A stretch of DNA of 64,000 bases, taken from positions 9,052,001 to 9,116,000 of the forward strand of contig NW_027361711.1 of assembly GCF_039654945.1 (NCBI RefSeq), read 5' to 3'. This document shows, in pieces, positions 5,290-62,487 of this stretch (position 1 is the stretch's first letter; every line of letters begins with the position of its first letter). Below the pieces are notes generated by a model. The model was not told the DNA's origin and did no database searches. It saw nothing but the letters and a program-made list of their open reading frames with translations. Both the position numbers and the translations under genes were made by a program. The DNA is from Dendrobates tinctorius. Its lineage: Eukaryota.

Positions 5290-5766
5290 TCTTTTTTTTA
5301 AAATGGACTGTAGTGCCATCAGTGATACATTGGGATGCTTGGACTTTTGAACTATAATAGGAAAAATTGGACAATAGTGCTATTCTTTAATCACACAGGT
5401 AGGAACCACCGTATCACTCATTGGCAATTAATTTCTGAACGTTCTCTACAGTCTTATGTACGAGTATCTATTTCCATTAGTATCTTCAATACACAATAGC
5501 ACAGTTCACAATTTTTTTATTTTTTGTCTAAATTTCACGTGCATGCTATGCAGGTAGTGTGCTGATAACTGCAGCTGCGGATATCAGGATGTAGGCGCTG
5601 GTGTAGTTATACATATTTCTTTTAATAAGAGGATGCCCCTTGAAAGTTTTGGCTTCTCTCAATGGGGTTAGGGTACCCCAAGTCTTCCAATAACTAGGAA
5701 TCTCCTAAGCAAACATAATTGTAGAACTTCTTATGAACGAACCTTTGTAAATGACATCTGATTTAA

Positions 5767-6410
5767 AGCAAACCTGTCAGCTGATTGGGCCGCTATAAGT
5801 TTCCGCCATCCGCCTTTCAGGGCTTATCTACAGCATTCTATAATGCTGTAGATAAGCCCCCGATCTGACCTGCAAGATAACAAAAATAAGTTTTATTATA
5901 ATCACCCGGGGGCGGTTCGATCCAATGGGTGTCACAGGTCCGGCGTCTCCCATCTTCTTGCGACGACGCCCTCCTGCTTGCTTCACTGGCTCCCCGGCAT
6001 CGCGCTCCTGCGCAGGCATACTTCTCTGCCCTGTTGAGGTCAGACCAAAGTACTACAGTGCGCAGGCGCCAGGAAAGGTCAGAGATACCCAATGCCTGCG
6101 CACTGCAGGAATCTGCTCTGCCCTCAACAGGGCAGAGGAGTACACCTATGTAGGAGAGTGATGCCCCGGGGAGCTATGAATCAAGCAGGAGGGTGGCGTC
6201 GAAAGAAGATATGAGGTGCTGGACCCAAACCTGCGACACCCATAGGACCGGATAGCACCGGACCGCTCCCCTGGGTGAGTATAATAAAACTTATTTTTCT
6301 TATCTTGCAGGTTGGATCAGGGCCTTATCTACAGCATTATAGAATGCTGTAGATAAGCCCTGAAAGGCGGTGGCCGCATCTTATACAAAACAGCTAACAG
6401 GTTTCCCCCT
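5767..6410. mobile_element. Kolobok/T2-like palindromic MITE
   Basis: TTAA at both ends (5763-66, 6411-14). AG(G/C)AAACCTGT termini. Arms are long inverted repeats, each with the hairpin GGGCTTATCTACAGCATT..AATGCTGTAGATAAGCCC. Confidence 0.85.
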
Positions 6411-7651
6411 TTAAGCTTTATTTAAAAAAAAACTTTGGACATTTCATATTGTACTTATAGCTAAATATTAATGTTGGTAACATATCAAAAGGCTCAAATT
6501 TACAATAATTTATTGGATTTTTAGAAATAAAATTACTTTCCAAAATGCTTTAGTTTTTAAATGTTCTTAATGATTTCAACTGCAAAAATGTAAATGTTTT
6601 TGTAAACGCTCATTGACGTAAAATATCTGGGCGTGCCACATATTTATCTGCAATGATGAGAAAGCAGCTGCAGGAGCATGAAGGCAGCTATTAGAATAAG
6701 CCATACTCCTCATAGAGAAGACAGAGATTGTTTATGACCATCTTTACCTTCCTGATAACTACATACACAATACTGAGCATATAGCACAGGAAGCACTAAC
6801 AACGGTTCCTCCTTCAGTCATCTGATCATCAGGTGCTGGGAGCTTATAGATTGAGATCCACCCTGCAATTCATCCAGGAGGCTGAATTTACCCTGTAACT
6901 GGAGTTAAGATATCAATCTCAGTTCCAGGGGAAATCATATGTGTAAGTATGGTGTCCCTATTGAGAGGCGCAATGTGTGAAATAAATAAAAATAAAAATA
7001 AATTTAAAATAAAATAATAACAAATAAGCCACTACCAATTTGAATCATAATTGCTAATATCCCCCCCTTTCCATTGAAAAAAAAGTGTGTCAGACATCTA
7101 AAAATAGTTGTTATGGATAGGGGAACAAAGATCACATTTAAAATGTATTTTAGTGGTCTATTGTGGTTATTAAAACAAAATTAAAATGTTAAAAACAAAC
7201 ATGAATTTCTATTTTTGTCCCCCCGAAATTTGCTCAATATTGGAAAAAAAATAATACAAAAGTAAAATATAAATTCAGCCCAACACATCAGGAAAAAAAA
7301 ATGAAAAAATATTTGAATATCCAAATAAGAACACATTTTAGAGCAAAATAGCCAGATCTTGATACTGATTATGATATGTCAATATATTAATCTCAGACGG
7401 CCCCTTTAAAGACATTATAACGAGAAAATGATCTCTGCAGATAAGTAGTACATTCTCAGAAATTGTACATTACCAGTGTGCAATTCATCTTATCTGCTGA
7501 GCCATATTCGGGAGTGGTGGTAATTTTGCAGAAGATAAGGACAATGCGTGAAATGTATTATTTTATAGAATAAACTGTTTAGTAAGCATTGCATCATGAA
7601 ATATATCCACCAACAGTGACACTGAGGTCTTGAGGTTGAAAAACAGCCTTA

Positions 7652-8030
7652 GGCCTGTTTCACATTTCCGTCTTTTAAGGTCAGTCAAAATCGGTCAGGC
7701 GGTTAAAAAACGGATCCGTCTCTGTCATGATCCAAACTGATGCCACTGGATCCGTTATGTATACGGATCCGCTGCAGCCGGGAAGAGGGTGAAATTTAAA
7801 GCAACCGCGGCCTGGAAAAACAAGAGAGAGAGAGAGAGATTTGTTTCTCCCCCACGGCCTTACCGGAACGCTATTCAGGGTTAAAATCCCTGCCACAGTA
7901 AGGCCTGTTTCACATTTCCGTTTTTTGACGTCAGTCAAAATCCGCCACTTTTAGAAAAAAATGGATCCGCCCCTTTTTTGGCAGACTTACTGTGGCAGGG
8001 ATTTTAACCCTGAATAGCGTTCTGGTAAGG
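7652..8030. mobile_element. Rearranged Harbinger-like MITE (GGCCTGTTTCACA family): two left termini plus an inverted duplication
   Basis: TTA|GGCCTGTTTCACA at 7652 and TAA|GGCCTGTTTCACA at ~7902; 7858-7902 is repeated in inverted form at 7986-8030. Confidence 0.7.
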
Positions 8031-8703
8031 TCTTGAAATATAGAGTGGCGCTATTATTTATAGCTTACACCAACAAAGAAATGAAAATACTACCAGTGTT
8101 TTCAATACTCAATAGTAGTTACTTCTAGGCACTGACCCCTTGTTCAGGTTTCCTTTACATTTACAGGTAGACCTTATGTTTTTTTCATAGCAAATATATA
8201 TTAGGTGGAGAATGACAAAGCTTTCCTTATCACTTGGATATACAAATCTATGGCCCCAGGGCCACATTCATAGATTAGACTACATAAGGAGTCACAGTAT
8301 CATATTCATTAAATTTACACCACAAAAGAAGAACATAGCTAAAGCAAAGTTGAGTGAATTCTAGGGATTGTCTGGGTGCAAACTGTATAGCTTGCTAGGG
8401 AATTCAGAATTTACAGAGAAGGGTCCTCTGTTCAGGATTCTCATCTCTTGGCCAAAAAGTGGTACTAAAGAGAGTTTCTTGAACTGAAATTCAAGACAAA
8501 TCTTTTGATTTCATTGAGCACTGCATAATGTTTAACATGACCCTGTCATCAGATTCAAGCTGTCTGAAACATTGGCAGCATGAATTAATAATGCTCCAGC
8601 ATTTCAGAGAAAACATACGTTGATCAGTTGGTCGGGGGCTATGAATCTCGGATGAGTAGTCTGAGTCAGATCCCTGCTCCGCTCATCCAGAATGTCAGAT
8701 TTA

Positions 8704-8916
8704 GGGCTCATACTCACTTGCGAGAGACTCGCACGATTCTCGTTCGAGTCTCTCGCATAACCTGGCACTGCCGCCGGCACTGGGACCGGAGTGTGCGGCT
8801 GCATAGAAATACATGTAGCTGCACGCTCCGGTCCGAGTGCCGGTGGCAGTGCCAGGTTTTCATGCGAGAGACTCGAACGAAAATTGTACGAATCTCTCGC
8901 AAGTGAGTATGAGCCC
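8704..8916. mobile_element. Harbinger-like palindromic MITE
   Basis: TTA TSD on both sides; TIR GGGCTCATACTCACTTGCGAGAGA; almost wholly palindromic. Confidence 0.9.
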
Positions 8917-9737
8917 TTATTCTTATACACGCACATATAGGGATAGACATGTCAATCTAAGGGAGTGGAGAATCTTCCTTGGATTTGTCTTCGAGGTACA
9001 GAATGTTTTATTTAAGTATGTTTTTTTCTGAAACATCACCAAATAATACATAAAATAACTCAACCAATGTCTGTTCATGTGACCTGTGGTTCAAGCAGCA
9101 TGAATCTGCTGTCAGGAGACACACAGACAGACATTGTTTTGACAGAGGTGAACACTGGGCAGCTTGTAAAGATGTTACAGACACTGCAGATTCAGCAGAC
9201 TTATTAACGCTAGATTCTCCGACAGCGAGGACAGATACGTGGGACAGTGATCATAACCATTGTAGGAGTTTTCTCCAGCTTGTTTCTTCAGTTTTGACAA
9301 ACCAACCTATCCTACCATACTACTTTACATATTTAGGGAGCTACTCACTAGCGCAGCCTATTGGGCTAAACATGGGATCTGCCAAATTATACCAGACAAT
9401 CCAAGATGTGCCATGCTGATAGGCTCCTACCCAAAAAGACTGAATGCTGTCATAAATACAAACGCTACCTCCACCAAGTATTAGTTTAAATGTGTGCATA
9501 TTTTTGCAATCACATTATTTTGGAAAAGATTTCAGTTTATCTCTCAATTGAATTCTACAGTTTATTGGCGACAAAGGTGGAAAAGATTCTGAAATTATTC
9601 TTGTTGATGTTTTTTTTTCAAACAACAAAAAAAATGGCATTTCAAGATGAGCATGTAGACTTTTATATATCCACTGTATAGTACAGATATACAAAATGAC
9701 TATTCGCTTGTCAGTAGTATTGACCCTGAGAAGTTTT

Positions 9738-10113
9738 GGCCCTGATTCATCAAGATCGGAGAGTTTCTTGATGGTCTCGTTGAGGGGGCGAGGTGAAGTC
9801 AGATGTTCCTGATTCATGAAGAGATGCGAGCTTCTTCATGAATCAGAAGAGTACGATGAATGGTGTGTGCCTTCTTGTGCAATTTCAGACATCTGGAGTA
9901 AGTGACTGGAATAAGATTTCTGGTATATGGAACATCACAGCTTGTCTTGTATTAGACGAGAGGGGACATCATGCAACCGCAGCATTCCTATGTCACTCCA
10001 GCTCTGCCCATTTTGGCTGGGAAGAACCGGCCAAAAGTTGAAACAAAATTGCAATAAACTGTTGCAACTTTTTAGAAGGTATTCTGGTGAAATTTCTTTG
10101 ATAAATTGGGGTC
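9738..10113. mobile_element. MITE (GGCCCTGATTCATCAA family)
   Basis: Imperfect TIRs GGCCCTGATTCATCAAGA / TCTTTGATAAATTGGGGTC; related copy at ~41665-42016. Confidence 0.6.
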
Positions 10114-10923
10114 TTTGTGTGTGGAACCTTACAAGGTCCATGCTAACAACATGACATACATAAAATATTGCCACCACTATTAACTATTACATTCCTTCTT
10201 AAGTTAACAATGCTTTATTCATAGATAACCATTAGAAACAAAATTATTTTTTTCAAAACTGCTTTGCATAAAATATTGGGTCATTTTATAATAAGCACTT
10301 CCCTTGCATACTTTTCCAAAATAAATTGCTCCAGCAAGCTTCCTAAGAAATTCCAATAAGCTAATTTTACATTTTCACGTTTGTGTCAGTAATAATTTAG
10401 TAATATTAATTAATGCAAATATCATTATAAGTAAAATGCTGAAAAACTTTTATTAAATATATATGGTAAAAAAAAACCCTAACACAATAAGCGCAGAATT
10501 GAAACACTTAATAAAGTTTATAACACATCATTCACAAAACACTAATTTACAAACATTTGGTCTATAGCACTAAAGAAAAGTACAACTAGTACTGAAAAAA
10601 ACAAAACCTCATTTAAAAAGAAGGATATGACCAGAATAATGTCGAGAGAAAAAAAACAATATTTTGGTTCTTTTAGCTCAAACTGTTCTAGTCCTCAACT
10701 GGTTTGACAGTAGTAAATGTATAACATGTCAATCATAAATCACTAACATTAATTTAACCACATTGGTAAAATAAGAGTAAATGTATGAGGCTGCCTGGTA
10801 ATTAGCATGAAGTTATGTGTATGTAAGTCAAAGTTTGGGTTTTGGCAATACTTTATACTGATAACTCAAAAATTTCTCCATTGTGAAGTGAATGTAGCTG
10901 TGGTCATAACAGTTGACTCGTAA

Positions 10924-11536
10924 AGGGAATCTGCCACCCCTTTTTTCGAATATGATTCTGCAGGCACCGCCATCAGGGGCTTATCTACAGCATTATGTAA
11001 AGCTGTAGATAAGCCCCCGATGTACCCTGAAAGATAAGAAAAAAGAGTTATATTATACTCACCCAGGGCGTTCCGGGTCCGGTTCGGGTCCGGAGGGAGT
11101 TGCGGTCCGGTCCGGCGCCTCCCATCTTGCAGCAATGACGTCCTCTTCATTCCTGCCTGTCGCAGCTCCGGCGTAGGCGCACTGCTCTGCCCTGTTGAGG
11201 GCAGAGCAGAATACTGCAGTGCGCAGGCACCGGACCTCTCCCGGCGCCTGCGCACTGCAGGACTCTGCTCTGCCCTTCACAGGACAGAGCAGTGCACCTG
11301 CGCAGGAGCCACGACAGGAAGGAAGAGGACGGCATCGTATGAAGATGGGAGGCTCCGGACCGGACTGCGACACCCATCGGACCGGACTGAACGCCGGTGT
11401 GAGTATAATCTAACTCTTTTTTCTTATCTTTCTGGTTACGTCGGGGGCTTATCTACAGCATTACAGAATGCTGTAGATAAGCCCCTGATGGCGGTGCCGG
11501 CAGCTCATATTCGAAAAAAGGGGTGACAGATTCCCT
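10924..11536. mobile_element. Kolobok/T2-like palindromic MITE (same family as 5767-6410)
   Basis: AGGGAATCTG(C/T)CACCC termini; TTAA at 11537-40; long inverted arms with the same hairpin. Confidence 0.9.
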
Positions 11537-11760
11537 TTAACAACTGGAAGTCTAATGTTTGTCATGAATGACACCCGACAAAAGGGCAAAAGCTTAAAAT
11601 AAATCAAATATATAATTTTATGAAAATCTGACTTCACAACGTATTTCCCATGGTCTTTCTCAACACTAACATACAACAGTACATACTGTAGTTGTTTCCC
11701 ATTTTTGCCTATAAAAGTTATTAAAATTTGGAATCTTTAATCGAAAGCTAACTGACTCCC

Positions 11761-11996: not shown

Positions 11997-12650
11997 CTCC
12001 TAACTTGCCTCTTAAAGGAACTCTGTTAGCACAGGATGACTGCTGAAACCATGGACATCTTCCGATTTGCTTGTTTTTCCTCCATCTACACCCTTATTCT
12101 TTGAATGACGGCTTTGGTTTCACAGAGCCAGAGAAGGGCGGAGACCGATGGAAACAAGCAGATGGCCACGCCATGATGCATCAGGTGCCTGTAGTTGGTT
12201 TGAAAAGTCATTCTGTGTTGACAGAGACCCTTTATAGGGATTCTGTAAGTAACATTTGCTGAAAACTAGGCTCACAAGTGTAAGGGCATATCAGTCCTTG
12301 GTTCCTCGTCGGTCTGCAGGCGCCGCCTTCCAATACATGATTAGCAGCATAGACAGAAGCTTCGCTCAAGATGTCAACCAAGCAGCAGAGGGTGGCACTG
12401 GTGGGGGAAGCTAAGAAGAGATGAGGATTGCAAGTGCACTGATACATCTACACGTGCACTTAAAGCCTAATTTGACTATGAATAAAATATTAATTTCTGC
12501 ACAATGTGGTACTAGATAGTGTCACAATAGGTATCCACAGATGTGTTTTATACTGCTCTATAATATACTGACCTTCATTTCTTAAAATAATGATGGCCAC
12601 TCGTTTTTCTTTACTTAGCTGCTTTTTTCTTGCCATAATACAAATTCTAA

Positions 12651-13045
12651 AGGTCCCGTTACATTTAGCGATGCACCAGCGATCCCGACAACGATACGAC
12701 CCGGTCAGGATCGCTGGTGCATCGCTAAATGGTCGCTAGTGAGCTGCCAAACAGGCAGATCTCACAAGAGATGCAGCAGCGGTCGGCGGTCGTCACTTAC
12801 CTGTCACACGCAGTGAGGGTGACGTCTTCCGCCCGCATCCATGGAGTCGCTTGTCGGCGCCAGCAGGAAGCCGACAACGAGAAATGGACCAGGACAATCT
12901 CGCGCTATCAGCGATATCCAACGGGGAACCGGGTCGGAGGTAAGTGTCACATGTAGCGAGATCGCTAGTGATATCGCTATTGCGTCACAAAATCGGTGAC
13001 GCTTTAGCGATATCGCTAGCGATCTCGCTATGTGTGAAGGGGGAT
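12651..13045. mobile_element. Harbinger-like MITE (AGG(T/C)CCCGTTACA family)
   Basis: TAA TSD; AGCGAT-rich inverted arms; relatives at 26105, 37926, 58381, 60993. Confidence 0.85.
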
Positions 13046-13362
13046 TAACAGTCTATTCAGTAGGACTATCAGCTGTGTATCCACCAGACTTCTGCACAAC
13101 ACAACTGATGGTCCCAACCCCATTTATAAGGCAAGAAATCCCACTTAGTAAACCTGACATGGCACACCTGTGAAGTGAAAACCATTTCCGGTGACTACCT
13201 CTTGAAGCTCATCAAGAGAATGCCAAGAGTGTGCAAAGCAGTAATCAAAGCAAAAGGTGGCTACTTTAAAGAACCTAGAATATAAGAAATAATTTCAGTT
13301 GCTTCACACTTTTTTGTTAATTATATAATTCCACATGTGGTAATTCATAGTTTTGATGCCTT

Positions 13363-13628: not shown

Positions 13629-13729
13629 TTCAGAGTGAATCTACAATTTTCATAGTCATGAAAATAAAGAAAACTCTTTGAATGAGAAGGTGTGTCCAAA
13701 CTTTTGGTCTGTACTTTAATTCTAGCTTA

Positions 13730-14363
13730 GGCCTGTTTCACACTACCGTTTTCAGGCGTCAGTCACAATCCGCTGTTTGGGGAAAAACGGATCTGATGGA
13801 TTTGCCTGGCTTATCTGTTTTTTTCCCACATAGGCTTGTATTGGCAGCGGATTGTGATGGATGGCCTTCCGTTGGTCCGTCGTGCGGCAGATTCATCATA
13901 AAATTGGGTTCCGTCAGGTAAAAAAACGTCCATAAGAACGTTTTTTTGTCTGTGGCGGACAGTGACGGATCCGTCGCTGTCCGTCGTCTGGTAGAATGGA
14001 TGCCTATGGGAGACGGATCCGTCCCCGTCCGTCACATGACAGAATCAGTTGATGGATTCCGTTTCTTTAAACTGAGTATGCTCAGAAGAATTTCCTTTCA
14101 TGAAATATAACCCCAAAACCCGTGTGGTCCTTTATATTCCAAAATCTGCAGTTTCGATGGATCCATCAGAAAAACGAATGAAAAAACGGATGCAACTGAT
14201 TAAACTGATCCGTTTTTTCGGCGGATCCGCTAGACGGACCAGTCGAAAAAACTGATCGTTTTCATCCGTTTGCATCCGTTTTTCACTAATTTCGATGGAT
14301 CCGTCATTCCGTCAAAACGGCGGATTTTGACTGACGCCAGAAAACTGAAGTGTGAAACAGGCC
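13730..14363. mobile_element. Harbinger-like MITE (GGCCTGTTTCACAC family)
   Basis: TIR GGCCTGTTTCACACT; flanks TTA/TTT; ACGGATCCGT-rich interior. Confidence 0.85.
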
Positions 14364-14829
14364 TTTGGGAAAATATTACTGACAGATTACTTTTAAGTGC
14401 AAAGTTGTGTACTCTGGAATAACTTTTGAAACTGGTTTAAGATGTTAATCTGTTGAGCCCTGAGCATGTCCACAGGGAGCAACAACCTGCTTTTTGCATG
14501 ATGTAAGGGTAAAGTATAAATATATCTCCACCTAGGAGAGGCATTCTGAAATATCAAGAAATGTATCCTAGCAAAAATGGGAACCTAGACCAAACTCCTA
14601 AATTTATTCAGACCCCAGGCCAACTAAACTATTTTTAGGCTTCAAAGTCTCTAGATCAGACCCCTATACTAATACCACACCCCAGGACAGTCTCCTGTTT
14701 TATTATCAGAACCACTACATATATTCAGAATTCTAGACCCCTATATGAATTTCATACTCCAAGCCAGCAGTCCAACTTCATTCAGATCACAAATCAGGCA
14801 AAACAACCTTCAGTCTCCAGACCAAACTA

Positions 14830-16405: not shown

Positions 16406-18176
16406 ATAATAATAATAATAATAATAATAAATTTTATTTTTATAGCGCCGACATATTCCACAGCACTTTACATTTCAGAGGGGATTTGTACAGACAATAG
16501 ACATTACAGCATAACAATAATCACATACAGTAGATTATAACAAATACCAAGAGGAGTGAGGGCCCTGCTCGCAAGCTTACAGTCTATGAGGAAAGAGGTA
16601 GACACGAAAGGTGGGTGGTAACAGTTGCCCTGATTGTACGGACCAGCCATAATGTTAAGTGTGTAACAGTACAGACACAGAGGGCTAATGGATGCATAAA
16701 GCATGTGGGAACATGATGCTGGGAACCTGGTTATGGTAAAATTTTTGGCTCTGCCACACAGGGATAGGTTAGGTTAATGTGTTGAGGCGATAGGCCAGTC
16801 TGAATAAATGCGTTTTCAGGACACGCTTAAAATTGTGGGGACTGGGGACTAATCGTATTGACCTGGGAAGTGCATTCCAAAGAATTGGCGCGGCACGTGT
16901 AAAGTCTTGGAGACGGGAGTGGGAGGTTCTGACTATTGAGGATACTAACCTCAGGTCATCAGCAGAACGGAGGGCGCGGGTAGGGTGGTATACTGAAACA
17001 AGGGAGGAGATGTAGGGTGGTGCTGAGCCATGGAGGGCTTTGTGGGTGAGGGTAATAAGTTTATACTGAATTCTGGAGTGGATGGGTAGCCAGTGTAATG
17101 ACTGGCACAAGGTAGAGGCATCGGTGTAACGATTGGTGAGGAATATGATCCTGGCTGCAGCATTCAAGACAGATTGGAGAGGGGAGAGTTTTGTAAGAGG
17201 GAGACCGATTAGAAGAGAGTTACAATAGTCGAGACGAGAATGAATAAGAGAAACAGTAAGAGTTTTTGCAGAGTCAAAAGTAAGAAAAGGTCGAATTCTA
17301 GAAATGTTTTTGAGGTGCAGATGACAAGAGCGAGCCAGTGATCGAATGTGGGGGGCAAAGGAAAGCTCGGAATCAAGTATGACCCCAAGACAGCGGGCAT
17401 GTTGCTGGGGAGTAATAGTGGAACCACAGAGGGAAATGGCAATGTCGGGTGTAGGTACATTAGTAGCGGGAGGAAACACAAGGAGTTCAGTCTTTGATAG
17501 GTTCAGTTTCAGATATAGTGAGGACATGATATTAGACACAGCGTTTAGACAATCGCCAGTGTTTTCTAGAAAGGCTGGCGTGATGTCAGGAGAAGAAGCG
17601 TATAATTGGGTGTCATCAGCATAGAGATGGTACTGGAAACCAAATCTACTGATTGTTTGACCAATAGGGGCAGTGTACAAGGAGAAGAGGAGGGGGCCTA
17701 GAACCGATCCTTGAGGAACCCCAACAGTAAGAGGAAGGTGAGAGGAGGAGGAACCGGCAAAAGAAACAGTAAAGGAGCGGTCGGAGAGATAGGAGGAGAA
17801 CCAGGAGAGAACGGTGTCCTTGAGGCCAATGGAACGGAGCATAGTGAGGAGGAGCTGATGATCCACAGTGTCGAATGCTGCAGAGAGATCCAAGAGAATT
17901 AGCATGGAGTAATGACCATTTGATTTAGCTGTTAGCAGATCATTAGAGACTTTAGTGAGGGCAGTTTCAGTGGAGTGTAAAGAGCGGAAACCGGATTGGA
18001 GAGGGTCGAGAACAGAGTTTTCTGAGAGATAGCGGATAAGACGGGAGTGGACCAGGCATTCCAGGAGTTTAGAGATGAAGGGAAGATTAGAGACAGGTCT
18101 ATAGTTAGCGGCACAATTTTGGTCGAGGGATGGTTTTTTAAGTAGTGGATGTATGATGGCATGCTTAAATGAGGAG
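16406..18176 (-). mobile_element. 5'-truncated L2 (CR1-group) LINE
   Basis: 9-bp TSD TATGACATA (16397-16405, 18177-18185); (TTA)n tail; open RT frame. Confidence 0.93.
16769..18176 (-). pseudogene. L2 ORF2 reverse transcriptase (C-terminal part, uninterrupted frame, 5' truncated)
   Basis: Motifs [43 protein letters not shown]; the first ~7 codons of the listed ORF come from flanking DNA. Confidence 0.93.
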
Positions 18177-18508
18177 TATGACATACTATTGGCCACGTCT
18201 AACCTTCAAACGACATAAACCACACTTAATATTTCATGATGGATCAGATGTATCCCCACTCTGAATCCAGAGCATCAATGTATCAATGCCTATCTGATCA
18301 AAGTGCTACTTGTGGATTATGGTGACATTCTGCTTTAGGAGTTACAGAACTATGAAATAATGATATCGGAACCTCTCCAACAGGAGTCCTGCTAAAAGAA
18401 TGAAGTTTCAGATTAAGAAGATGTGGACTAGTGTTCCAGGTAAAATATATTCTACTTGCTTAGCATCTCCAACATTCTCTTGTTAAAATATTTCCTTACA
18501 AACACTGA

Positions 18509-18961: not shown

Positions 18962-19589
18962 TTAATAGTAATGATGTAACTGAATGTCCCGTACATTCCA
19001 TTCTGTATTGTCTTACTGGTAATAATTAACAGACATAAGTGAATAAATGCCATATTTTCAAGTTATCTAAGAATCAGAAGTATAGCCTATTGTTCCTCCA
19101 TCAGGCAGTATGAGTGTAACAGCTGCCTCAATATGATGCAATCCCACTACCGGCTGCTGAATATCTTTTTTTTTTTTTTTAAAGAGGACCTGTTACCAGA
19201 TTTAACAATACAAACTACATACATGATCTTTTGGGCCTGAAGTAACCAATGTACTTACTTTGAAAACCATGTTAGAATGACCATGAAATCCTGATATCAA
19301 GATAAGCATTTTATAAGCCCAGTTATAGAATGAATTTGCTCATAAGTCCAAGTGCATAAAGTCTGTGCTCTTCTTTGCTAACAGTTGCAGCTTGTACTGA
19401 GCAGTGTGAGATCTCGGCAGCTTGAAGGAGGAAGGACAGTGAAGATCTGAGAATCAGGTTAGGAGCATGAAGATTTTCAACCCCCAAATAGTAATACATA
19501 GCCCATTTTAACCCCTAGATAGTAGATTGTCCTATACTGTACTGTATAAGTTTCTAATTCATTAAATCTGTGTATATGTATGTGCATGT

Positions 19590-19930
19590 AATATAGTGTG
19601 CGTGTGTTAATATACTCACCTACCGCCGCTCTCTCCGGTATCCAGCACTGTTCTGCTCCTCTTCTCAGTGATGTCACCACGCTTCAGACTCTCCTGGTCA
19701 CACTGCACTCTGCTTGACCTAGAAGTGTCTATTACAACGTAAGTCTATGGAGAAACAGAACAAAGCCCTATAGATTTACATTGTAAAAGAGACAACCGGC
19801 TCACACATAGAGCAGAGAGTGAGCCGGAGAGCTGCAATTGCGGTGACATCACTGAGAAGAGCAGCACAGCGTTGGATACCGGAGAGAGCGGTGGTAGGTG
19901 AGTATATTAGCACACGGACACTACATTGCA
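19590..19930. mobile_element. Fold-back MITE core (~80-bp inverted arms)
   Basis: ATATACTCACCTACCGCCGCTCTCTCCGGTATCCA...GTGATGTCACC mirrored at ~19840-19910. Confidence 0.7.
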
Positions 19931-21142
19931 TGCATATAATATAATAATAATAAATATAAATACATAAATAATGTAATAATATATGATAATATAATATATT
20001 AATATAATAATAATATAATATAATAATATATGCACATTTGATCAAGTAAAAACTTAGTGGGAGTGCTTGCTTATAACGGGAAACTATTTTACATATAATT
20101 ATATTTTACATGGTTGACATATTAAACGGATATCATACAGATGTCATATGAGTATAAATATCAGACATGTAAATAGCATATAAATGAAAATAAGGAGGAA
20201 AATTGTGTGTCATCCAAAAAAAATACATTTTCTTATGCTTCTTTGAACTTGGCCTTATAGCAAATGCTATAATTTTATTTTGCGTATTATTCACCTCACA
20301 TCAGCAGATTCTCTACAAGTTTCAAAAATAGCTTCAAACGGAGATAGCCTTTATCAAATCGTGCCTTCATCAATTCCTATAAAATTATCTTATCACTTAT
20401 ATTATTGATTTTAAGCCTGTTTTGAATTCTTCCATATTATTTTCCGTATTTATATACAGTATGTAGAAATGCTCTAAACTTTGATAGATAAAAACAAACA
20501 TGATTTTCTCTATATTTTGCTGTTAGATGTGTGACGTTACAATCATGGTTTCCATGTGTAAGAGGGTGAGCAGTACTCAAGAAGACACCGTGGCAAGAGA
20601 CAGTTATATTGTATAGAAGTATAATATGGTTACATGTACGATATATATAAAAGTGTATTTTATCCTTATTGCCGCTATGTGGTTAAGTTTTCTGAAGGTT
20701 TTATCTCAAGGCCGTCCCCGGAAAATGGAGAGGGCTGTCATTAGGGGAATAAGTGGAAGTTTATAGGGATATATTTCAGGTTAAATGTTTGGGAATAGCC
20801 CATAAACTGGGAGGGGTTAGAGCAGATAAGAAGAGGAATCACTTCCTGAGAGAGTGGCTAGTCTTCAAACAAAGTGTTTGCAAGATTCAAGGTCAAGTTC
20901 AAGTACAAGCTTTAGGACATGATATATAGGTATGAAAAGGAACGCGCTTTATTGGATTATACCTCTTAAAATCAAATATGGTTGATTTTTAGCTGTATGA
21001 TAAAACTCACACTCTATCAGTATAACATAGCACTTGATAGAAAGTGAAAGGTAGATGGCTGTCGGAACTCTCCTGGTGTTTTTACCAGACAAAGGAGGCA
21101 GTTTGTTCCTGAAATGTGATGTTTGTCCTCCTTAACACTGAA

Positions 21143-55995: not shown

Positions 55996-57602
55996 CAGTG
56001 GGGCAAAAAAGTATTTAGTTAGTCAGCAATAGTGCAAGTTCCACCACTTAAAAAGATGAGAGGCGTCTGTAATTTACATCATAGGTAGACCTCAACTATG
56101 GGAGACAAACTGAGAAAAAAAAATCCAGAAAATCACATTGTCTGTTTTTTTTTTCATTTTATTTGCATATTATGGTGGAAAATAAGTATTTGGTCAGAAA
56201 CAAGCAATCAAGATTTCTGGCTCTCACAGACCTGTAACTTCTTCTTTAAGAGTCTCCTCTTTCCTCCACTCATTACCTGTAGTAATGGCACCTGTTTCAA
56301 CTTGTTATCAGTATAAAAAGACACCTGTGCACACCCTCAAACAGTCTGACTCCAAACTCCACTATGGTGAAGACCAAAGAGCTGTCAAAGGACACCAGAA
56401 ACAAAATTGTAGCCCTGCACCAGGCTGGGAAGACTGAATCTGCAATAGCCAACCAGCTTGGAGTGAAGAAATCAACTGTGGGAGCAATAATTAGAAAATG
56501 GAAGACATACAAGACCACTGATAATCTCCCTCGATCTGGTGCTCCACGCAAAATCCCACCCCGTGGGGTCAGAATGATCACAAGAACAGTGAGCAAAAAT
56601 CCCAGAACCACGCGGGGGGACCTAGTGAATGAACTGCAGAGAGCTGGGACCAATGTAACAAGGCCTACCATAAGTAACACACTACACCACCATGGACTCA
56701 GATCCTGCAGTGCCAGACGTGTCCCACTGCTTAAGCCTGTACATGTCCGGGCCCGTCTGAAGTTTGCTAGAGAGCATTTGGATGATCCAGAGGAGTTTTG
56801 GGAGAATGTCCTATGGTCTGATGAAACCAAACTGGAACTGTTTGGTAGAAACACAACTTGTCGTGTTTGGAGGAAAAAGAATACTGAGTTGCATCCATCA
56901 AACACCATACCTACTGTAAAGCATGGTGGTGGAAACATCATGCTTTGGGGCTGTTTCTCTGCAAAGGGGCCAGGACGACTGATCCGGGTACATGAAAGAA
57001 TGAATGGGGCCATGTATCGTGAGATTTTGAGTGCAAACCTCCTTCCATCAGCAAGGGCATTGAATATGAAACGTGGCAGGGTCTTTCAACATGACAATGA
57101 TCCAAAGCACACCGCCAGGGCAACGAAGGAGTGACTTTGTAAGAAGCATTTCAAGGTCCTGGAGTGGCCTAGCCAGTCTCCAGATCTCAACCCTATAGAA
57201 AACCTTTGGAGGGAGTTGAAAGTCCGTGTTGCCAAGCGAAAATCCAAAAACATCACTGCTCTAGAGGAGATCTGCAAGGAGGAATGGGCCAACATACCAA
57301 CAACAGTGTGTGGCAACCTTGTGAAGACTTACAGAAAACGTTTGACCTCTGTCATTGCCAACAAAGGATATATCACAAAGTATTGAGATGAAATTTTGTT
57401 TCTGACCAAATACTTATTTTCCACCATAATATGCAAATAAAATGAAAAAAAACCAGACAATGTGATTTTCTGGATTTTTTTTTCTCAGTTTGTCTCCCAT
57501 AGTTGAGGTCTACCTATGATGTAAATTACAGACGCCTCTCATCTTTTTAAGTGGTGGAACTTGCACTATTGCTGACTGACTAAATACTTTTTTGCCCCAC
57601 TG
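55996..57602 (+). mobile_element. Full-length Tc1 DD34E transposon (1607 bp)
   Basis: TA TSD; ~205-bp nearly identical TIRs starting CAGTGGGGCAAAAAAGTATTTAGT. Confidence 0.97.
56364..57386 (+). pseudogene. Tc1 transposase, 340 codons with one in-frame TGA at 57132-57134
   Basis: [16 protein letters not shown].., [33 protein letters not shown], ..NKGYITKY; 1023 nt with no frameshift. Confidence 0.95.
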
Positions 57603-60401: not shown

Positions 60402-60710
60402 CCCCTTCACCACATTCGCCATACGGCACAAGTCAGAAGTGGGTGTATAGAACGGGCTCACATGGCAAGCCCGACTCTCACCTAGCAGTTGATTCCTGTA
60501 TATTACAGCCAGGACCTACTGTTAACAATTCCAGGCAAAGCAGTGCTTTGCCCATGATTGTTAACTTGTTAAATGCCGCTGTCAGTTTCATACACCGGCA
60601 TTTAACACGTGCCAGCATGTGTGCACATTATTCTCTCCACCCATCAGTGACGTGATTATGTTTTATAGATAAGTTATCATGATAGCAGGGGTCAGCTGAT
60701 GACCCCAGTG
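60402..60710 (+). mobile_element. piggyBac-like element terminal fragment
   Basis: TTAA|CCCCTTCAC start. Confidence 0.5.
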
Positions 60711-60992
60711 CCTTATATTGCGGCGCTATGGAAAAAAAAGCCATCCAATCTAGGGATTCCAACGTAGTCCACCGAATCCGAAGTAGTCTACAAATGGAAA
60801 CCTGAAAGACATAAAGGAAAGGTGAAGAAATAAAAACTATAAACAGTTCCTTATTCACCAATTTATTATTCAAAAATAATCCCCACTACTCCAACGATAC
60901 ATGTAACCTGATGCCGCGTCGGCGGTACCTGATCCTATTTCTGAGACCCGTTTTTCAGAACAAGAACCTATCCCTGAATTCCACGTCTATTA

Positions 60993-61348
60993 AGGCCCCT
61001 TTACATTTAGCGATGCACCAGCGATCCGACCCGGTCAGGATCGCTGGTGCATCGCTAGATGATCGCTAGTGAGCTGCCACATAGGCAGACCTCACAGCGA
61101 TGCAGCAGCGATACAGCGGACGATACTTACCATTCACACACAGCGATCCTGACATCCTCCCGCCCGCCTCCACGCGTCGCTCGTCGTCACAGCAGGAAGC
61201 CCAGCCGGACATTCTCACGCGATCAGCGATGGACAGCGGGGGAGCCGGTCGGAGGTAAGTATCACACATAGCGATATTGCTAGCGATATCGCTATAACGT
61301 CACAAAATCGGTGACATTATAGCGATATCGCTATGTGTAAAACCCCCT
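60993..61348. mobile_element. Harbinger-like MITE
   Basis: TTA flanks; homologous to 12651-13045. Confidence 0.82.
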
Positions 61349-62487
61349 TTAGTCTCCAAATCCTGCCAGTCAGTGACTCCGGTTCCTTGTCCCCATCCAG
61401 CAAACTTGAGCCCCGGGGTTGGCAGCTGCGATACAGGCCTTAAAACTCTCCTTAGATAAGGTTTTCCATCATGAGAAAAACAAACTATTCCTTAGGATTC
61501 GCGCACCCTGGAGTATAATATGGAGGAATGCAATGCGAGAAATCATCCCATTGCACTCTGACTAAAGTTAGTAAATGACTCTGTGCTTATCTGCAAATTT
61601 TTTCTCAGCTCGGATCAGACTGAGAAATAAACACACAAAAGTTCTTTCTTTGTAAAACGCACACCCTGACAAATTCCCTTTTTAACAATTTATTGCAAAA
61701 AATAATAATCCACAGGGTCTACCGTAATTCCAAATGGAGGTCCTACAATGATCCTTGTCTTCTTTGTCCAGTGTATGGGGTCCCATTCAGAGAACAAAGC
61801 TCCATAGACAGGAGCAGCATCAGCCAATGCCACAGTTCAGCAGCTGTGACCAGTGGTAAACTTTTGTGTGTGTGTGATAATTTCTTTTGACCACAGGGTT
61901 AGTAATGGGGGTGTCTTACAGATGGGGCTCCATTGCTATCCCCTGGGCTACTCAACTGACATCAACACCAAAACCATCACTCCAATTGCCAAATCACCAG
62001 GGCAATGGTGAAGAGCCAAGGCTAATTGCCAAAATTGGTGCATCTAATGGATGAACCATTTCTGGGGCTGCTCACGGCTGGTCTTATTATGCTGGGGAGG
62101 GGCCAATATCCATGGACCTTTCCAGCCTATTAACATCACTCTGCAGGTGTCTGCTTAGACATTACTGGTTATTAAAATAGGGGGAATCCATCATCATTTT
62201 TTTAAGGTCCCCCGTTTTTAATAACTAGTAAAGGCTAGGCAGAGAGCTGTGAGCTGATATTAATAGGCTGGGGTGGTCCATGTTTATTGTCCCATTTCCA
62301 GACTAATAACACCAACTCACAGCTGTTTGTTTTCAATTAGCTGGTTATTAAAAATAGAGAGGACCCCACAGCATTTTTTTTCATGTATTTATTTACTTAT
62401 TAGCTAAATAGAAGTACAGAAAACTACGCAAGCAAAGCACTGATTATATATCTCACTGACATATTTCTTTTATCTGTATATCTACTG

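Follow-up and report, generated by a model that had tools for sequence, protein, structure and literature searches.

Two palindromic elements in the window (the whole 64,000-nucleotide stretch of frog DNA analysed here) have CpG-rich centres with NRF1-like motifs, followed outward by YY1-like motifs and splice-donor-like sites. An earlier note on this DNA read them as portable bidirectional promoters with a first exon on each arm. Are they such promoters, or copies of a transposon whose internal modules have another origin? We favor the second answer and, with a probability of about 70%, regard the elements as two old, fixed and partly decayed copies, from two subfamilies, of a very abundant non-autonomous T2-type DNA transposon that is probably inert.

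Two T2-like palindromic MITEs

The two elements and their flanking target sites are as follows.

5767..6410, unstranded: copy 1, a T2-type fold-back MITE of 644 bp, with TTAA at 5763-5766 and 6411-6414
10924..11536, unstranded: copy 2, of the other subfamily, 613 bp, with GTAA at 10920-10923 and TTAA at 11537-11540

The target sites place the element limits exactly where they had been drawn before, and contigs from other loci depart from the copy 2 element precisely after 11540. Assignment to the T2-like palindromic MITEs, also proposed by the earlier note, is supported by the sequence, whose TTAA target and AGGRR ends match the definition of the T2 family, which is attributed to Kolobok transposons (PMC6004289). 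Copy 1 is flanked by TTAA on both sides, and copy 2 by TTAA on the right and GTAA on the left. Copy 2, whose end sequence is AGGGAATCTG..., has AGGGA at both ends. The right terminus of copy 1 (...CCCCCT, reverse complement AGGGGG) gives a fitting AGGGG and the left (AGCAA...) has one mismatch; the family-majority end for this copy, read from contig loose ends at 6385, is AGGGAACCTGTCACCTG. In other copies the majority ends are AGGGAACCTGTCACC and AGGGAATCTGTCACC (loose ends at 6385 and 11509). Both elements are short (613 and 644 bp) and non-coding, with chance ORFs of at most 129 amino acids and no database relatives, and the whole of each element forms an inverted repeat, a near-palindrome throughout. 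Another TTAA-inserting superfamily, piggyBac, was considered and rejected: ends of a piggyBac-type MITE presumably begin CCC...GGG next to TTAA, and the actual ends are TTAA/AGG... and ...CCT/TTAA.

The T2-type element inserts at TTAA and would be moved in trans by a Kolobok-superfamily transposase (DDE + THAP + H2CH), encoded by an autonomous element with the same ends. We saw no autonomous partner or transposase in the window, so the putative link to Kolobok comes from the family rule. Transposons make up most of the window, and the ORFs scanned in it are reverse transcriptases and a Tc1/Sleeping Beauty-type HTH.

Depth for the family was 50,000-560,000 in run X2, against about 10-25 for unique DNA, although depth is not copy number. 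Contigs of related organism B span from unique flanking DNA into both elements, indicating that both insertions are common to B. Because this relative is 3.5-5% diverged in unique DNA, both insertions are old.

A mirrored arm with conserved internal blocks

Copies 1 and 2 are near-palindromic from end to end, with arm complementarity of 92-93% over the outermost ~105 nt and 81-86% centrally. RNA of copy 2 is predicted to fold into a single hairpin of ~300 bp (-497 kcal/mol, z = -41.5). This fold raises the idea that the element gives rise to double-stranded RNA, in which a read-through hairpin would be diced to small RNAs that silence the family or a host gene. Sub-threshold matches to generic microRNA hairpin models agree with it, and Xenopus embryos do produce small RNAs from intronic transposon remnants (PMC3875865). 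However, those small RNAs derive from other element types and are mostly antisense to the remnants, not hairpin-derived (PMC3875865), the Rfam matches fall far under gathering scores (~40 bits vs 78-94), and the ordered motifs are left unexplained. We consider a role of this kind distinctly improbable.

One arm spans ~310 nt. Each element is a fold-back in which this arm is repeated as its mirror image, giving outward-facing doubles of each feature. From the outside in, the arm begins with the end, an 18-bp local hairpin and a 36-nt cassette of donor, pyrimidine tract and AG. After a GC spacer that varies come the AAGATGG block, one GCGCAGGCGC site, the second local hairpin (CTGCCC-N6-GGGCAG) and, at the centre, another GCGCAGGCGC. 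The elements are palindromic and mutually homologous, and thus the four arms are one ancestral arm seen four times rather than independent occurrences. The palindrome likewise accounts for motif pairing "on each arm," and each family therefore counts as one independent observation.

The local hairpins are located as follows.

5820..5859, unstranded: outer local hairpin, GGGCTTATCTACAGCATT / AATGCTGTAGATAAGCCC, in the copy 1 left arm; mirror at 6321-6360
10971..11022, unstranded: outer local hairpin in the copy 2 left arm; mirror at 11441-11488
6026..6043, unstranded: inner local hairpin CTGCCC-N6-GGGCAG; also at 6118-6135, 11187-11204 and 11270-11287

A 17-mer of the outer hairpin has 8 matches in the window (0.18 expected), and this hairpin in the copy 1 left arm is the best-kept island between the copies (0.87). 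The inner hairpin has 4 matches, against 0.27 expected, and is 0.84 conserved between copies. Arms are 81-85% identical within one element and 72-76% identical between elements, and the two subfamilies differ by about 27%. Shared states within both arms of one element were found in 24 columns, compared with 5 cross columns, so renewal of the mirror symmetry postdates the divergence of the subfamilies. Between subfamilies, conservation is 0.83-0.87 in the internal islands, 0.57 at the ends and 0.43-0.61 in the spacers. It is unusual for a MITE to keep interior islands better than its ends, and this pattern, which speaks against simple inertness, suggests that the interior matters.

These islands could serve the transposon itself rather than host transcription, either as transposase-binding or structural signals or in formation and renewal of the fold-back. 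The best-kept blocks are the hairpins, and the renewed symmetry fits such a role. Kolobok transposases carry a DNA-binding THAP domain (PMC6004289), and the inner hairpin contains inverted GGGCAG half-sites, one of which reads TGAGGGCA and fits the THAP1 core, TxxxGGCA (PMC2879526). But different THAP domains recognise different sequences, so the THAP1 motif is not simply transferable (PMC2879526). Moreover, some 260 nt separate the inner hairpin from the ends, a long distance for a transposase site, and the donor-like cassette is left unexplained; binding is putative. We see a service to the transposon as conceivable but somewhat unlikely. In the preferred explanation, an old and probably inert T2-type element, the modules would be traits of the transposon lineage, and could be structures or protein-binding sites for mobilisation or be a legacy of the sequence from which the fold-back arose.

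NRF1-like and YY1-like motifs in CpG-rich centres

Based on motif matches only, the family could be a mobile bidirectional promoter resembling a CpG island, flanked on either side by a short first exon. Central NRF1-type sites would drive divergent transcription, AAGATGG would lie just past the start site, and a GG/GTGAGTAT donor would splice the transcript into the DNA flanking the insertion. The sites concerned are listed here.

6059..6102, unstranded: symmetry centre of copy 1, with facing TGCGCAGGCGC (6059-6069) and TGCCTGCGCA (6093-6102)
11220..11254, unstranded: symmetry centre of copy 2, with TGCGCAGGCAC (11220-11230) and GCGCCTGCGCA (11244-11254)
6009..6018, + strand: second NRF1-like site of copy 1 (family form GCGCAGGCGC), reading TGCGCAGGCA
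6143-6152, - strand: copy 1 mirror of the second site, reading TACATAGGTG
11170-11179: second NRF1-like site of copy 2, GGCGTAGGCG, with family majority C at 11174
11295-11304, - strand: copy 2 mirror of the second site, reading TGCGCAGGTG
11342..11348, + strand: AAGATGG, a YY1-like core and Kozak-like ATG; mirrors at 11122-11128 (-) and 5950-5956 (-)
6205-6211, + strand: AAGATAT, the degenerate YY1-like core of the copy 1 right arm

On re-check, all coordinates given by the earlier note for NRF1-like and YY1-like motifs were exact, and the degeneracy it reported in the right arm of the first copy was confirmed. In the window, CTGCAGTGCGCAGGC has 4 matches against 0.04 expected. The central NRF1-like 11-mer is intact in two of the four arms, the second NRF1-like site in none and the YY1-like core in three, so that loss ranges from 1 to 4 of 4 arms across the motifs.

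Several features favor the promoter interpretation. The motif order is identical in all arms, and the blocks coincide with the islands conserved between subfamilies. Family-majority letters restore GCGCAGGCGC at 11229 (G in the copy 2 centre) and 11174, and also supply the donor -1 G at 11398. The centres are CpG-rich, as had been claimed, and this despite their age: over 362 and 336 nt in copies 1 and 2, GC is 0.60 and 0.66 and CpG o/e is 0.65 and 0.83, compared with a window-wide o/e of 0.51. Both exceed CpG-island thresholds (GC above 0.5, o/e above 0.6, length > 200 bp). In addition, the ATG of AAGATGG is in phase with the donor, at distances of 66, 48, 54 and 63 nt, all divisible by 3, and three of the four arms have an open frame.

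Other observations count against it. Pairing of motifs is automatic in any palindrome, NRF1-like palindromes are expected within a GC-rich one, and the motifs were picked after the sequence was viewed, from a choice of factor motifs that runs into the hundreds. The match to YY1 is limited to the core: the element reads AAGATGGGAGGC, without the 3′ half of the consensus AAGATGGCGGC.

Between subfamilies, the motif blocks stand out as islands. Since insertion, the motif positions of copies 1 and 2 have decayed about as fast as neighbouring ones, with 5.6% changed versus 8.5% of all other positions (p = 0.26) and 11.4% of other interior positions (p = 0.054); the motif figure becomes ~10% if 2:2 columns are counted as changes. 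CpGs decayed faster than other sites in the four arms (17.6% vs 8.7% changed, Fisher p = 0.003); of their 23 changes, 13 were CpG transitions. Germ-line hypomethylation predicts no excess of CpG decay, and an excess was found, which at only 2-fold and in four arms is a weak sign of methylation. NRF1 is not known to bind methylated sites, which we also count against promoter function. Overall, we think it very unlikely that the family is a mobile promoter.

The donor-like cassette and putative RNA contigs

The donor-like sites belong to a cassette found in all four arms.

6275..6310, + strand: 36-nt cassette of donor, pyrimidine tract and CAG (GTGAGTATAAT...TTGCAG) in the copy 1 right arm, facing outward
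5905-5870, - strand: mirror cassette in the copy 1 left arm, donor decayed to GTGATT (5905-5900)
11399..11434, + strand: cassette in the copy 2 right arm, GTGAGT intact, acceptor AG lost (ends CTG)
11027..11062, - strand: cassette in the copy 2 left arm, donor (11062-11057) and CAG both intact

An outward GTGAGT on each arm had been proposed, and it is present in three arms (6275, 11399 and 11062-11057), while the fourth has GTGATT. The family majority in the copy 2 right arm (11398 T>G) gives GG/GTGAGT. Taken by itself, the donor is compatible with chance: 20% of random 310-nt segments of the window contain, on a given strand, a U1-like site as strong (P = 0.20), a further point against reading the arms as first exons. 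Paired outward GTGAGTAT motifs also occur close to the ends of two palindromic MITEs in the window that are unrelated to this family, with a chance of 1-2% each, which agrees with the first-exon reading.

We compared the donors at 6274/6275, 11398/11399, 5906 and 11063 with the listed joints and loose ends of Logan contigs from guessed-RNA runs, and none of those listed lies at a donor. This comparison has almost no power, as it uses assembled contigs, in which starts are not visible, and guessed library types.

Alternatively, the U1-type site, with or without the pyrimidine tract and AG, could be an RNA-processing module acting on read-through host transcripts. By recruiting U1 to suppress premature cleavage or the creation of exons, for example, it would make genic insertions less harmful, and these would survive more often. 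Consistent with this, the entire 36-nt cassette is kept between subfamilies (0.83), not the donor alone, and the sites in the unrelated MITE families fit as well. However, one arm is without the acceptor and another without the donor, nothing places copies 1 and 2 inside a gene in this transposon-rich window, and 36 nt falls below the intron length that vertebrates are known to splice. We find such a module quite doubtful.

A broader scenario is that several unrelated MITE families of the frog genome, the T2-type family among them, came by convergence or exchange to carry one kind of portable module, a centre resembling a CpG island with U1-type donors facing outward. The T2-type family would add a phase-0 ATG in Kozak context. 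Young unmethylated copies would then be two-way promoter and first-exon traps that seed spliced transcripts, even new N-termini. If the promoter reading were right, ready-made bidirectional promoters with first exons would be spread through a vertebrate genome by a family of thousands of copies, a transcript-creating mechanism known for retrotransposons but not for MITEs. We give the broader scenario little chance. In the preferred explanation, copies 1 and 2 themselves are probably inert and methylated as other repeats are, without working promoters or first exons; promoter activity may occur in younger or unmethylated copies.

Comparison with known systems

The T2 MITEs of Xenopus, which include Xmix/T2-A1 and T2-C, are attributed to the Kolobok superfamily (PMC6004289). 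Like them, the present elements have a TTAA target and AGGRR ends, are non-coding and a few hundred bp long, and occur as old insertions in a frog genome, where their copy number is very high. In contrast to them, copy 1 has degenerate ends (left AGCAA), the present element is wholly fold-back with conserved internal islands, and no partner transposase was seen; the comparison is by description.

Kolobok-N2_XT of X. tropicalis is 496 bp long with palindromic internal repeats (PMC12676858), and a Kolobok MITE of X. laevis is 650 bp long with 195-bp inverted ends (PMC5655803). Both resemble the present elements in being palindromic, Kolobok-type, similar in size and equipped with transcription-factor motifs. 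Some copies of these Xenopus elements coincide with open chromatin or p300 peaks and have more highly expressed genes nearby (PMC12676858, PMC5655803). However, they are distal enhancers whose motifs are of KLF/GATA/RUNX or T-box/Six type, described without a promoter, start site or splice donor (PMC12676858, PMC5655803). The family is thus a known kind of frog transposon, to which a well-built fold-back member is added here; its structure, end rule, abundance, presence of both insertions in a relative and module conservation between subfamilies were observed directly.

The LINE-1 antisense promoter and LTR promoters are transposon-borne promoters with a downstream donor that produce chimeric transcripts. 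The logic proposed for the present family would be the same, with a promoter, a short leader and a donor within a repeat reading into host DNA. LINE-1 and LTR elements are retrotransposons for which start sites and junctions have been demonstrated, whereas here there are motifs in a DNA transposon. Unlike those promoters, the motifs here face both directions because the element is a palindrome.

Architecture of the two copies

The limits that the earlier note gave for copy 1 (5767-6410, 644 bp) and copy 2 (10924-11536, 613 bp) proved exact when checked on the sequence, and its description of them as palindromes is borne out, as both copies are inverted repeats from end to end. Copy 1 has TTAA on either side, and copy 2 has GTAA on one side and TTAA on the other. 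The arms are complementary at 92-93% of positions over the outermost ~105 nt and at 81-86% near the centre. As a single strand, copy 2 is predicted to fold into one long hairpin (-497 kcal/mol, z = -41.5). These two are the only family members within the window, and their arms share one order of features.

Features of an arm, from the end inward
1: outer 18-bp local hairpin, GGGCTTATCTACAGCATT / AATGCTGTAGATAAGCCC
2: 36-nt cassette reading outward, GTGAGTATAAT...pyrimidines...CAG, with a branch-like CTTAT between donor and pyrimidine tract; 6275-6310, 5905-5870 (-), 11062-11027 (-), 11399-11434
3: variable GC spacer of GGTCC-type repeats
4: AAGATGG block
5: first GCGCAGGCGC-type site
6: second, inner local hairpin, CTGCCC-N6-GGGCAG; 6026-6043, 6118-6135, 11187-11204, 11270-11287
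7: central motif, CTGCAGTGCGCAGGCGC

The cassette is conserved in all arms, with the donor gone in one arm and the AG gone in another. Its 36 nt are below vertebrate intron length. AATAAA lies directly 3′ of the donor in the copy 1 cassette and is absent from that of copy 2.

Element class and abundance

The T2 MITE family is defined by a TTAA target and AGGRR termini, features that also link T2 to Kolobok transposons (PMC6004289). Both termini of copy 2 are AGGGA; copy 1 pairs an AGGGG end with a degenerate AGCAA one. In contigs of other loci with 90% likeness, the majority ends are AGGGAACCTGTCACC and AGGGAATCTGTCACC, and contigs from other loci exit the element exactly past the TTAA at 11540. 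The family ends can be written AGGGAAYCTGTCACC. The T2-like class proposed previously is thus supported by the TTAA target and AGGRR-type ends, and on these features we assign the object to the T2/Kolobok-type fold-back MITEs, a known kind of element. The element ends do not match piggyBac termini, and a piggyBac assignment is rejected on that ground.

No autonomous partner was found within the window, whose content is mainly transposons and in which no host exons were recognised. The larger ORFs scanned encode reverse transcriptases and a Tc1/Sleeping Beauty-type helix-turn-helix (HTH).

Larger ORFs of the window
16769-18196 (-): reverse transcriptase (RVT_1), E = 3e-35
31063-32262 (-): reverse transcriptase (RVT_1), E = 2e-19
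56364-57134 (+): Tc1/Sleeping Beauty-type transposase HTH

The T2-type family is very abundant: in run X2, a DNA-like sequencing run from a related organism, summed contig depth is 50,000-560,000 over the elements vs about 10-25 over unique DNA, a figure that is not a copy number. Elsewhere, the exact 32-base hairpin pattern had zero matches in metagenome contigs, and a 16-mer had only single chance hits among metagenome, prokaryote-genome and viral contigs. When both copies were compared by BLAST with 269 loci, no genuine copy came up, and an ORF inside copy 2, tried as a route to copies in public assemblies, had no homologues. In Rfam, the sole matches were to generic microRNA hairpins and fell below threshold, at about 40 bits vs gathering scores of 78-94. 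A tRNA scan was run on account of a B-box-like GGTTCGATCC, present in a single arm and absent from the rest, and found no tRNA. A bacterial promoter and terminator scan, irrelevant to this element, was empty.

Age and subfamily history

Contigs of run X2 pass from unique flank into both elements, and thus both insertions are older than the split from that organism, whose unique DNA is 3.5-5% divergent. Within an element the arms share 81% and 85% identity; between elements they share 72-76%, and by these values copies 1 and 2 are assigned to different subfamilies. In 24 alignment columns the two arms of an element agree with each other and differ from the other element, vs five cross columns. 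Mirror symmetry was therefore restored or preserved once the subfamilies had diverged, and palindromy is a family trait.

Tests of the promoter and first-exon reading

The earlier note had read the MITE as a mirror-duplicated bidirectional promoter plus exon 1, with an NRF1-like centre, a YY1-like AAGATGG and an outward GTGAGT donor on each arm. Its motif coordinates are all exact, but the left-arm donor of copy 1 is GTGATT, so not every arm carries the donor. Because a palindrome mirrors every arm motif in the opposite orientation, the occurrence of a donor in both arms and the pairing of NRF1 motifs add no weight, and the four arms of two homologous elements are one ancestral arm.

When compared with the 11-nt sequence complementary to the U1 5′ end, the T2 donors have 8/11 matches, and 20% of random 310-nt window segments carry an equal or better site on a given strand. 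TGCGCAGGCGC fits the NRF1 consensus YGCGCAYGCGCR (database matrix GCGCCTGCGCA), and a GC-rich palindrome will readily hold such a self-complementary NRF1-like site. Of the YY1-like site, the AAGATGG core stands and the CGGC that follows it in the YY1 consensus is absent.

The central 11-mer is intact in two of the four arms, AAGATGG in three and the donor in three. The second NRF1-like site is intact in none, with CpG-to-TpG/CpA changes in three. Private changes affect 5.6% of motif positions (about 10% with 2:2 columns counted), vs 8.5% of other positions (p = 0.26) and 11.4% of the other interior (p = 0.054), neither difference being significant. Consensus CpG positions are changed in 17.6% of cases vs 8.7% for the rest (p = 0.003), with CpG transitions making up 13 of 23 CpG changes. 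This decay matches the pattern of methylated repeats, weakly, as a twofold excess drawn from four arms.

A search of sequencing runs returned none recorded as RNA. The RNA comparison drew on assembled contigs from four runs, three with RNA as the guessed type and the fourth of unknown type; contig depth cannot rank the parts of a stretch, so ratios of guessed-RNA to DNA depth along the element were left aside. The joints and loose ends listed are subfamily mosaics and exits at element ends. No donor junction occurs among those listed, a weak negative from material that cannot show transcript starts. Promoter and first-exon function appears unlikely for these two decayed copies.

Signs of a conserved interior

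Identity between the subfamilies is 0.87 in the outer hairpin, 0.83 in the cassette, 0.84 in the inner hairpin, 0.86 in the central motif and 0.75 in the AAGATGG block; elsewhere it is 0.57 at the ends and 0.43-0.61 in the spacers. Family-majority letters restore GCGCAGGCGC at 11229 and 11174 and place a G at donor position -1 (11398). The element centres have a GC content of 0.60-0.66 and a CpG o/e of 0.65-0.83, vs 0.51 for the window. From these islands, majority letters and CpG-rich centres we infer that some constraint acts on the interior at the transposon-lineage level.

The window as a whole has its CpG o/e of 0.51 at a GC content of 0.44, and many 500-nt stretches exceed 1.0 (e.g., 13801-14400, 12501-13100 and 60701-61500), so CpG richness alone is a weak promoter marker in this genome.

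The ATG of AAGATGG is Kozak-like (A at -3, G at +4) and lies 66, 48, 54 and 63 nt from the donor, a multiple of three in each of the four arms. Three arms keep an open frame; the right arm of copy 1 has an ATA start and then TGA.

Stretches from ATG to donor
6205-6274
5956-5906 (-)
11345-11398
11125-11063 (-)

A coding role for these stretches was rejected, as the arms lack a conserved peptide and differ by internal frameshifts. The shared phase either is coincidental or reflects a constraint on phase alone (post hoc p about 0.01-0.04).

Part of the conserved interior may instead be a site for the THAP domain of a Kolobok transposase. Kolobok transposases have a THAP DNA-binding domain (PMC6004289), and the THAP1 core is TxxxGGCA (PMC2879526). 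The conserved inner hairpin is an inverted pair of GGGCAG half-sites, and one half, TGAGGGCA, fits this core. However, THAP domains vary in specificity, so the candidate is only a lead, and it shows how easily several factor names attach to one GC-rich palindrome. For the family-level promoter and first-exon reading, we put the probability at roughly one in ten.

Other palindromes and known systems

Two unrelated palindromic MITEs in the window have paired outward GTGAGTAT sites with 9/11 U1 matches; the chance for each is 1-2%.

Other palindromic repeats of the window
8697-8923: TTA-flanked MITE, outward CAA/GTGAGTAT at 8903 (+) and 8717 (-), slash marking the putative splice point
19579-19938: outward TAG/GTGAGTAT at 19898 (+) and 19619 (-)
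7853-8035, 12947-13037, 13729-14364: without outward GTRAGT

In the MITE at 8697-8923, which is very abundant in sequencing-run contigs, the outward sites lie within the inverted ends themselves and a hairpin of 46 bp (8759-8858) makes up the GC-rich centre. Close to the middle of the element at 19579-19938 there is a single inward GTAAGT (19739). The stretch 7867-8063 is likewise highly repeated in the contigs, and 34658-35066 consists of 409 N, an assembly gap or mask.

In the literature we found no vertebrate MITE described as supplying a promoter and spliced first exon. Xenopus has palindromic Kolobok MITEs of similar size, some copies of which act as or overlap enhancers (PMC12676858, PMC5655803). 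Among them, Kolobok-N2_XT is a palindromic Kolobok MITE like the present elements (PMC12676858), and a 650-bp Xenopus element, which has p300 peaks and inverted ends of 195 bp, is comparable in size to both copies (PMC5655803).
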